DNA of 33,472 nucleotides from Octopus bimaculoides (taxonomy: Eukaryota), in NCBI RefSeq assembly GCF_001194135.2, contig NC_069002.1, positions 5,915,200 through 5,948,671 on the forward strand. Reading direction: 5' to 3'. The notes below the pieces were generated by a model. That model saw nothing but the letters and a program-made list of their open reading frames with translations. It had not been told where the DNA came from and searched no databases. The translations under genes and the position numbers were made by a program. This document shows, one piece after another, positions 7,301-10,300 of the stretch (position 1 is its first letter; every line of letters starts with the position of its first letter).

Positions 7301-10300
7301 AGATCCATTAGATCTGGATTGACCTTCGGTGAAGCAACAAATAATATAAATCAAATATAAATCAAATATTTTTTTAAGGTGATCACATTTGGTTACCTAC
7401 ATGAAAGAATATAATAAAGTTTTGGATTCCCAGATGAACCTCAAAAGTTGCTTCTTTAAACTTTGGTCTTTTTGGTAGACATGAACAATTGTTCAAGAAT
7501 ATGGAGTTGATTGTAAGAGTCAGTTTCTGAAGATTGTTTTTGAATTACCGAAAGAATTTGTATCACTAAAACAGCCAGCCTGTAAAATATGACTACATAA
7601 CTCTTCCCTCCACAATTTGGCCCTTTGGATTTTTGCCCTCCTGGATCATTGATTAAAAAAAATACACATATATGTGTGTGCATGTGTGTGTGCATTATAT
7701 ATGAACACATATAATGATGGTGATGATGATGTACACACACACACACTAGTTCAATAAATCAGCAATTTGTAACGGTTTAATATCAATAATAACTGTTTTT
7801 TTAAGGGTCATAATCAAGATTTAAAAAAAGTCAGAATCCATGGCATAATAATAAAAACAACACACAATAAACAAAACAAAAATAGCCCACAAATTCATGT
7901 ATTATATACTCACTTAAATTCATATATATACATATACATATATATATATAGATATATATATACACACACACATATATATACGTATATATATATGTATGTA
8001 AGTATGAATATATAGATATATGTATGAGTGTATGTGTATATATGTATATATATATATATATATATATATGTATATGTATATGTATATGTTCTGCGTTCTT
8101 GTCCCATTTTGTATTATATATATATATATATAAATATACATACACATATATATAAATATAAAGGAAAGAAGGAGAGAGAGAGAAGGAAAGGGGTGAGAGA
8201 GAGGGAAGGAGAGAGAGAGAGAAAAGGAAAGGGGTGAGAGAGAGAGAGAGAGAGAGACATGTATATGTGTAATATCCACATAAACAACAACAAAAATGAA
8301 ACGAAATAACCACATCTGCCTACTACGCTGCATAGACTGACTGCACAGACAGAACGGAAGAAAATAAAAAACAGTGAGGACAGATATAAAGCTGTATGCT
8401 GTGTCACCCCTCGGTAGTTGTTAAGTTAGACCGTCGCCTTGGATGCAGATGCACAACACTGTGCAGTGCATCCAAGAAAATCTCCCTCTAACTGACCTGA
8501 GCAGAGGAGAACGCTGGTTGACTGGACAGCTGGTTTGACAGCTGAGCAATAGGCTGGATCTGGAAGCCTCGACTAGCCAAATTATCCTGAAGATAAAACG
8601 TTGTGAGAACTAAGCAAATGTGATTTAAAAAGAAGAAAAAAAAAACGAAAAAAAAAAGAGAAACTAAATGGAAACAAACTTAATCATGATTTAGACACAT
8701 GAGATTTACAATAAGAGAATAAGTCTTATTTAAATCTTAGGCTGTCTTGCCTAAGGTGCCATGCAATGGGATTGAACCTGAAATCATATAGTTGGAAAGC
8801 AAACTTGTTAATCGCAGAGCTGTGCCCATACATCTAAGTTTATGCTGATGTATACAGGTACATGTCAATGGGCACACACACACATACGCATGCACAGGTA
8901 TCCAGGATATAAACAAACATACATACATTTGATCAATAAACCTTGCTTTATACAAGGGGGTGCTGAAAAGTTCCTGGCTTTATGGGTATCACGAAAGGCC
9001 TGGTTAGAGGCCCAACCTTCCAAGTTCTTTTACAGGGCTTAGAAATGCTGCGATAAGTGCGTGAATCTGAGAGGGGAATATATTGGATAAAATCATAATT
9101 AACTGATCCTCTTGTATTTTGTTTTTTTACTCAAAGCCAGGAACTTTTCAGCACTCCCTCATAATTTACTGGCAAAACGTGAATATTGGAACCAAGATAT
9201 GAAGTAACATAGTTATATCATAGATTAACAATATATATATATATATATATATATATATATATCAATAGTTGGGTAAATATCAGTTGTTTCCTCTTCAAGC
9301 ATATCTGCTTATTTCATTATTACTATCCAATATGTCGTCTCAGTTGCTGCTGTATGTTAGTCAAAAAACATATTAAAATTGAGAATTACGGAAATATTTG
9401 GCAGAGTTATCGTACAACACAACAAAAAATGTGGAAATTTTTTTGGACTATTTATTCTCCTTTATAATAGGAAGTATGAAGATTTACACATTAGATAGAC
9501 ATGTAAGAAATTTCCTATTAGAAAATCTTCAGACAAAGAAAAATTATAATTATACATATGTATATATATATATATATATAATGGACTCTCTTGTTGTTGG
9601 ACAACACATGAGAGTTCTGAAATTCCTAGCTGAACAACCACACTGATGATTTGTTTATTGTGATCAAATCTTTGTGTTCACATAAGCTCATTTCCTCCAT
9701 CAAATCAGCATTACCTGTGCAGGTACACAATGCACCGCATGCCAGATGACGAAATGATTGCAGTGCAGTGTGAAATGAAGTGTTTTGCTCAAGAACACCA
9801 CACAATGCCAGGTCTGGGTACTGAAACCATGATCTCGCAATCAATATTGAGTGCACCATCTCAACCACTGAGCCATATAGTTATATGCATATATATTTAT
9901 ACTGCAACCTTAAAAAAATCTTTCCAGAAAAAGAACCTGAAAGTTCCAAGAAATATAACAAGAAGAAATATAAATGAAGAATTCATCAAATGGTAAGTTA
10001 TGAATTTCACAGAAATATATTAGCATTTTTGTATAAAAGGATGATTCCATCTCACAAGAATTTAAAAAAGATGGAAACTGGACAATGGATATTTTAAGTT
10101 GCAGTGAATAATTTTTGTATAGTGGTTCTGGTGGTGGTGAGGAGCGAGATATTTTAAAATGGACCAGTTGTATAAAGGTCTGAGTATGCAGCTAAGCCGG
10201 TAAGTTATTAAAACAATTGAAATTGGTTCTTCAAATGGATATTCGTATTGAATTTTTTTTTAGTTTTATCAATGAGATGAAAAAGCTTTACCAAAGATTC

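Follow-up and report, generated by a model that had tools for sequence, protein, structure and literature searches.

The window analysed here, 33,472 nucleotides (nt) of the Octopus bimaculoides genome (contig NC_069002.1, positions 5,915,200 to 5,948,671), carries on its minus strand a series of open-reading-frame (ORF) fragments of unc-13/Munc13, with the MUN and C2C exons in order. The composite query matched unc-13 fragments with Pfam MUN and C2 domains at 1e-84, with a gastropod unc-13 as the closest named protein, and Munc13-1 chains in the PDB matched the host-gene product at 3e-33. Exons were placed by tblastn with mollusc and arthropod unc-13 fragments. Those that matter here are the constitutive exons D and E and, between them, a 90-nt exon whose downstream intron opens with a hairpin (Table 1). 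This hairpin had been picked out in a preliminary description of the window, and its possible role in the splicing of the 90-nt exon is the subject of this report.

Exons D and E are both in phase 0 at the junction that flanks the 90-nt exon, and in another mollusc transcript (P0002) D is joined directly to E (...PMIQ/DMSKE). Inclusion of the 90-nt exon adds 30 residues to a loop of the MUN domain, and its skipping preserves the reading frame. Alignment to solved chains put the insert where crystallographers had deleted residues 1408-1452 of Munc13-1 (ELWKLVMNTMERTIVLPP-EF-SKLKDH...LTPKQCAV), a loop that in the rat protein is described as "poorly conserved and ... subject to alternative splicing" (PMC5344669). 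The 30-residue insert therefore occupies the same place in the MUN domain (...TIVLPP / ...LTPKQCA...) as this vertebrate loop, for which a variant without 1415-1437 exists. The vertebrate and unc-13 inserts are without sequence similarity, however, and no donor hairpin has been described for the vertebrate exons. A microexon of C. elegans unc-13 (PMC12287369) was set aside as not relevant, since it lies elsewhere in the gene, in the stretch between CaM and C1 domains.

Conservation and distribution of the 90-nt exon

The only close relative of exon E in the protein collection was P0104, which is 99% identical over the exon (94% with the composite query), the next best match reaching 86%. P0104 lies on a 229-kb ENA contig, referred to as L001, from a second, distantly related mollusc genome. 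A blastn comparison of the window with L001 gave three matches only, namely exon E, exon F and a segment made up of the 90-nt exon with its splice sites. The last of these spans window positions 8612 to 8488 at 88% identity, with the AG and GU at identical positions in both genomes, and it is the sole conserved island in 7.7 kb of otherwise unalignable intron. When the entire D-E intron was searched against L001 under permissive settings, nothing beyond the exon was found except microsatellites. Within the exon, 8 of the 90 nt differ from L001, and because seven of these differences are synonymous (the eighth is an N to S replacement) the exon appears to be translated. On this comparative evidence the 90-nt exon is genuine and coding. 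At 0.20, its third-position divergence from L001 is half that of the constitutive exon E (0.41; Fisher p = 0.07), a trend that regulated exons would be expected to show and a hint of extra constraint on synonymous sites. L001 also carries retrotransposon ORFs (zf-CCHC, RVT_1, rve) at 11293-15005, in the intron downstream of unc-13 exon F.

Exons D and E were present, 1-7 kb apart, at five further loci from four lophotrochozoan-type samples (L003-L007). At none of these was there a cassette-like ORF by tblastn, DNA similarity to the exon or hairpin by blastn, or a match to a covariance model built from the window and L001 hairpins. An exhaustive HMMER search with the 30-residue peptide found no match among 1.84 billion representative proteins, a library that holds one protein per 50% cluster and in which a cephalopod isoform could be hidden. 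Because they are absent from the five loci and the peptide was unmatched among the representatives, the exon and hairpin look restricted to the lineage of the window and L001 genomes. Protein homologue listings extended to 1.75 times the query length (longest entry 329 with a query of 188 aa, 133 with one of 76 aa), and a 41-aa insert query returned no candidate among proteins within that length, which says nothing on full-length isoforms. A conserved 21-mer was absent from the genome_contigs and viral_contigs collections, and an exact look-up of the window ORF that spans the hairpin returned no record. A single metagenome-contig match to a degenerate exon pattern (L002) was dismissed as a bacterial chance match.

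The 90-nt exon is, on indirect hints, a putative cassette. The pointers toward cassette use are its in-frame length of 90 nt, its position in a loop subject to alternative splicing in vertebrates, its low synonymous divergence, and its absence from the five lophotrochozoan loci.

The gene also varies in structure around this exon. The E-F intron measures ~640 nt in the window (2411-3053) and ~165 nt in L001 (10250-10415) and is missing from the species of P0077, P0093 and P0075, where E and F form a single exon; L006 and L007 likewise have exons B and C fused. Assembly gaps (runs of N) occupy window positions 909-1065, 14846-14939, 24622-25454 and 27977-28015, the second of them close to exon A (14606-14457). 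A short interspersed repeat with ~80%-identical copies is found at 8746-8810, 11492-11548, 11583-11647 and 31115-31169; at its core it is similar to a tRNA T-arm (GGTTCAATCCC...), the copy nearest to the 90-nt exon is just ~160 nt upstream, and there is no copy in 20 kb of L001.

The donor hairpin and its counterpart in L001

The hairpin lies on the minus strand with intron position +1 at 8496, and the RNA quoted in the preliminary description is the reverse complement of window 8420-8496. The exon/intron boundary reads ...GCUCAG/GUCAGU, and the intron opens with GUCAGUUAGAGGG.... Folding of 8424-8496(-) with RNAfold returned exactly the stems that had been described. These are a 7-bp basal helix (AGUUAGA/UCUAACU) pairing +4 to +10 with +67 to +73, the former being, as had been claimed, part of the U1/U6 recognition site; an 11-bp upper helix (CUUGGAUGCA/UGCAUCCAAG, 10 bp plus a U.G pair) pairing +20 to +30 with +50 to +60; and a 6-bp apical helix (UGCACA/UGUGCA) with a GUGU loop. 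The minimum free energy was -30.8 kcal/mol compared with a shuffle mean of -18.5 (z = -3.90), and in this check against shuffled sequence, which had been proposed, none of 200 dinucleotide shuffles was as stable. Across both strands of the 33-kb region, 30 of 9141 windows of 73 nt (0.3%), at ~7 distinct places, reached this energy, while at seven neighbouring unc-13 introns the opening 73 nt folded at only -2.3 to -8.8 kcal/mol. The upper helix was robust in every context folded (flanks of 60-90 nt on the exon side and 120-250 nt on the intron side). In keeping with the description, the element is not a recognisable repeat, as it occurs in a single copy, both within the window and across every locus fetched. 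No Rfam 15 match for the hairpin was found in the whole window, where local scores were at chance level only, or in L001. The hairpin is real and non-random. As a separate feature of the same region, seen in the window only and not conserved in L001, pairing is possible within 8482-8506(-) between the exon end UCUCCUCU and AGAGGGAG of the intron (+8 to +15), which places the GU in a small loop and excludes the basal helix.

In L001, the intron opening GUUAGUUAGUCCAUGUUCCCUGAAUGGACUCUCUCUCCACAUUCAGGUUGACUGACUAAC also forms a two-tier hairpin at the donor, with a basal helix of 11 bp (+1 to +11 with +50 to +60) and an upper helix of 8 bp (+19 to +26 with +40 to +47). It folds at -23.7 kcal/mol (z = -3.19), 2 of 200 shuffles being as stable, and ranks among the most stable 1.1% of L001 windows. 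In a MAFFT alignment of the window and L001, the two helices are in register on both of their arms. Indels are confined to the loops, outside the arms, and a CU-rich loop in L001 replaces the apical helix of the window. Fourteen of the 18 comparable pairs are kept, three changed on both sides (U-A to C-G and G-C to A-U in the upper helix, A-U to U-A in the basal helix), there are no one-sided changes, and the four broken pairs all lie at helix ends. When neutral decay of the window hairpin was simulated at the observed divergence, a fold as stable as that of L001 with the donor distally paired arose in ~1.5-1.8% of cases. Taken with the outlier status of the fold in both genomes, this comparison leads us to judge selection on the hairpin structure likely. 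Common to both species are the upper helix and the base-paired positions +4 to +10; the degree of occlusion of the donor differs.

This comparison also bears on the preliminary suggestion that the hairpin could be a 3'-tailed mirtron, a reading that would extend to any intronic microRNA precursor. The hairpin does begin at or near the first base of the intron, and its size and energy fall within the range of pre-microRNAs. Its duplex, however, is interrupted by a large internal loop in both species (window, 9x6 nt; L001, 7x2 nt), the window helix starts only at +4, and the L001 upper helix is just 8 bp long and closed by a terminal loop of 13 nt. Between the species, the would-be 5p and 3p products differ at seed positions and covary rather than being invariant. 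The 3' tail would have to reach the exon E acceptor, at a distance of 5.1 kb in the window and of 8.7 kb in L001, as compared with ~100 nt in the known Drosophila case of a 3'-tailed mirtron. The best Rfam microRNA family, mir-3047, matched on the wrong strand and with 22 bits, short of its threshold of 53. With an interrupted duplex, covarying arms, a 5-9 kb tail and no microRNA family match, the mirtron reading was rejected, its probability being negligible.

The CUAAC-type 3' strand of the basal helix could alternatively serve as a branch site for a nearby acceptor (...UGUGCAG/ at ~8341), which would delimit a small intron or an additional exon. Both UCUAACUUAAC in the window and CUGACUAAC in L001 resemble the branch consensus, and a pyrimidine tract with an AG is present at ~8375-8341. 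The branch-like look of CUAAC is nevertheless expected because the strand is complementary to the donor, as any donor-complementary strand would be. The tract and AG are not conserved in L001, the distance from branch to AG would be ~85 nt, and the downstream sequence offers only in-frame stops or low-complexity ORFs. We therefore regard this use of the strand as very improbable.

Cephalopods edit their RNA heavily, and the hairpin could be an ADAR substrate in which editing of intronic adenosines such as A+4 or A+8 alters the strength of the donor or the stability of the helix and thereby tunes splicing. Adenosines in UAG triplets lie within the duplex at +8 in both species and at +4 in L001. 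On the other hand, interruptions divide the duplex into short helices, of 7, 11 and 6 bp in the window and of 11 and 8 bp in L001. The exon lies outside the duplex, whose arms are both intronic, and therefore no recoding is possible. A search within ~3 kb for sequence complementary to the exon found none, only 7-11-nt chance matches. The R/G site of GRIA2 (GluA2) is a related system, as its imperfect ~70-nt hairpin includes the 5' splice site of an alternative region in a neuronal gene and links ADAR, structure and splicing. There, however, the exon end with the edited adenosine forms one arm of the duplex, whereas here both arms are intronic and no recoding is involved. Editing of the donor hairpin is compatible with a role in splicing control as favoured below, but taken as an explanation in its own right it strikes us as improbable.

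The most stable 73-nt fold of the window (-56 kcal/mol) lies elsewhere, at 29843-29921 in another unc-13 intron. It is a near-perfect inverted repeat with 38-nt arms, 97% complementary, around a 3-nt spacer, and the other loci fetched contain no copy of it. It may represent a transposon end, a long double-stranded RNA or a source of hairpin RNA, and as a long double-stranded RNA it could be a far better ADAR substrate than the donor hairpin.

Table 1 Features of the 90-nt exon, its flanking exons and the donor hairpin in the window
Feature	Position	Strand	Description
Upstream constitutive exon D	11013..11114	-	Ends ...GVQMIQ; donor CAG/GUAAAC
Acceptor region of the 90-nt exon	8587..8612	-	Short pyrimidine tract and AG (8588-8587); conserved with L001
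90-nt exon	8497..8586	-	Phase 0-0, 30 residues; AG/G at 8588-8586, CAG/GU at 8499-8495
Donor and basal-helix 5' strand	8487..8496	-	GUCAGUUAGA, intron +1..+10; +4..+10 paired
Upper-helix 5' strand	8467..8477	-	UCUUGGAUGCA, +20..+30; homologous to L001 CCUGAAUG, two pairs changed on both sides
Apical helix and GUGU loop	8450..8465	-	Window-specific; L001 has a 13-nt CU-rich loop instead
Upper-helix 3' strand	8437..8447	-	UGCAUCCAAGG, +50..+60
Basal-helix 3' strand	8424..8430	-	UCUAACU, +67..+73; isolated helix -5.9 kcal/mol
Alternative donor partner	8413..8425	-	CUUAACAACUACC, +72..+84; pairs -1..+11 in a shifted register
Downstream constitutive exon E	3054..3279	-	Contains ...TQQG; tblastn with mollusc unc-13

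Strength and accessibility of the donor

The donor of the 90-nt exon is weak. Position +3 is C in the window and U in L001, compared with A in all seven neighbouring donors, and the predicted duplex with U1 contains an internal mismatch and reaches -8.1 kcal/mol in the window and -8.7 kcal/mol in L001. In L001, this donor is firmly buried in the predicted fold. Positions +1 to +11 are paired with a probability of 0.99, and only C-3, C-5 and G-6 of the exon are paired. Opening the donor costs 8.7-11.2 kcal/mol (8.7 for -3 to +6), as against 2.7-3.1 at two control donors, and the basal helix, at -13.6 kcal/mol, exceeds the U1 duplex. In the window, only +4 to +6 of the U1 site are paired. The ranking of opening costs was unchanged at 10-20 C. 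Occlusion of the donor, as modelled, is thus strong in L001 and marginal in the window.

Several points weigh against the splicing-control reading that is favoured below. In the window, opening the U1 site (-3 to +6) costs 2.9 kcal/mol, within the 2.6-5.6 found at constitutive donors. Opening +1 to +10 costs 6.0 compared with 1.7-5.0 at the controls, 1-2.5 kcal/mol above the highest of them, and the basal helix at -5.9 kcal/mol is weaker than the U1 duplex. In longer contexts, the 7-bp basal helix shares its donor-proximal strand, which then has three partners: +67 to +73, +72 to +84 (pair probabilities of ~0.55 by partition function in the -60 to +120 context) and exon -4 to -11. The register of the basal helix differs between the species, and the structural comparison covers these two alone. 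All folding energies are in silico values, computed with 37 C parameters by default. The covariation is likewise modest in statistical terms, as a pair-shuffle control reached the observed level in 70 of 500 shuffles (not significant) and random placement of the 12 observed substitutions kept at least 14 pairs in 2-15% of trials. Use of the 90-nt exon as a cassette, finally, is putative. The preliminary description had called for compensatory substitutions in orthologous introns; three double changes were indeed present in L001, and the ~2-15% chance estimates temper what they can carry. Its proposal of a donor-sequestering switch found partial support: the weak donor, the in-frame exon and the homologous hairpin all agree with it, but the window U1 site is as openable as that of constitutive donors.

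A rival reading has the hairpin functionless, an ancestral chance fold that is yet to decay, with the bases near the donor kept only for splice-site recognition. Comparison of two species with weak covariation statistics leaves room for this, as do the conservation of +1 to +9 that is expected in any case, a neutral identity that at such divergence would still be ~59%, and an ascertainment bias, the window having been chosen for its hairpin. It fits poorly with arms that stay free of indels, which are found in the loops, within an intron that is otherwise unalignable. The hairpin is also a thermodynamic outlier in both species (0.3% and 1.1%) with a neutral-decay estimate of ~2%, and all changes at paired sites within the helices are double and compensating. 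On balance, we think it unlikely that the hairpin is without function.

A further reading keeps the function and dispenses with occlusion. The upper helix would then be a platform for a splicing factor that binds stem-loops or double-stranded RNA, or a looping device in which ~50-70 nt are looped out and a downstream intronic element is brought to the weak donor, as by the FGFR2 exon IIIb stem. Weak donors often require intronic enhancers, donor occlusion in the window is marginal, and no part of the structure is better conserved or more robust than the upper helix, which holds two of the three compensatory pairs. The loops, however, share no evident protein-binding motif (GUGU as against CUCUCUCUCC), the sequence downstream of the hairpin is not conserved between the window and L001, and the L001 donor is firmly buried. 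This variant is inseparable here from occlusion, and as the sole explanation we judge it possible but unlikely.

A candidate splicing-control structure

The hairpin is probably a real splicing-control structure because it is also found, with compensating changes, in a second mollusc genome. The reading that we favour, in which it is a selected cis-acting structure at the weak donor of a lineage-restricted 90-nt exon and acts like those of MAPT and SMN2, has in our estimation an even chance of being correct. The intron opens with a two-tier stem-loop, in which a conserved upper helix of 8-11 bp begins ~20 nt in and a basal helix ties the donor-proximal bases to a CUAAC-containing strand 50-70 nt downstream, in a register of +4 to +10 in the window and +1 to +11 in L001. 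According to this reading, a helix over the donor would compete with U1 (+1 to +6) and with U6 (+4 to +6 and beyond). Whether the exon is included would then hinge on whatever loosens or tightens the helix, be it a helicase, an RNA-binding protein, temperature or editing, and in all likelihood inclusion would be held back, as in MAPT exon 10 and SMN2 exon 7.

Stem-loops at 5' splice sites that limit U1 binding are documented in both of these genes (SMN2, PMC1802598; MAPT, PMC2483273), and in both the stability of the helix relative to the U1 duplex sets the level of inclusion of MAPT exon 10 or SMN2 exon 7 (PMC2483273, PMC1802598). In MAPT, the exon 10 stem-loop limits access of the U1 small nuclear ribonucleoprotein, and destabilising it raises inclusion (PMC2483273). 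The resemblance to the unc-13 hairpin is that the tau structure likewise sits at the donor of an in-frame neuronal exon, one that is alternatively used. The tau stem, however, is one short helix running from the last exon bases to ~+16, whereas the unc-13 structure has two tiers over ~60-73 nt, leaves the exon largely outside and pairs the donor with a strand 50-70 nt away. The tau stem is also backed by mutational and disease evidence, while the unc-13 hairpin is known from its sequence. In SMN2, the TSL2 hairpin partly sequesters a weak donor within a local helix, and its effect scales with the stability of the helix relative to that of the U1 duplex (PMC1802598). This scaling is mirrored by the basal helices of the window and L001, at -5.9 and -13.6 kcal/mol, on either side of a U1 duplex of about -8. 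Mostly exonic and human-specific, TSL2 has 8 bp and a triloop, whereas the unc-13 hairpin is conserved between distant species.

A more ambitious version, that the hairpin is a switch sensitive to temperature, to ADAR or to both, and sets the inclusion of a cephalopod-specific 30-residue insert in the MUN loop, we consider improbable on present evidence. If it were true, an RNA structure would link environment or editing to the priming of neurotransmitter release in large-brained ectotherms, and the marginal and high stabilities of the basal helix in the window and L001 would represent species-specific set points. If the element were instead non-functional, the case would illustrate that a hairpin beside a splice site in a single genome is weak evidence. 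As a functional element, it would add a non-vertebrate, evolutionarily supported case to the few 5' splice-site structures with proven roles, those of tau and SMN2. The product of unc-13/Munc13 has the master role in priming synaptic vesicles for release, and the MUN loop is a known but poorly understood isoform site. A strongly conserved insert exon, restricted to one lineage and with its own conserved donor hairpin, would provide a testable cis-element for the cephalopod diversification of a core synaptic protein.

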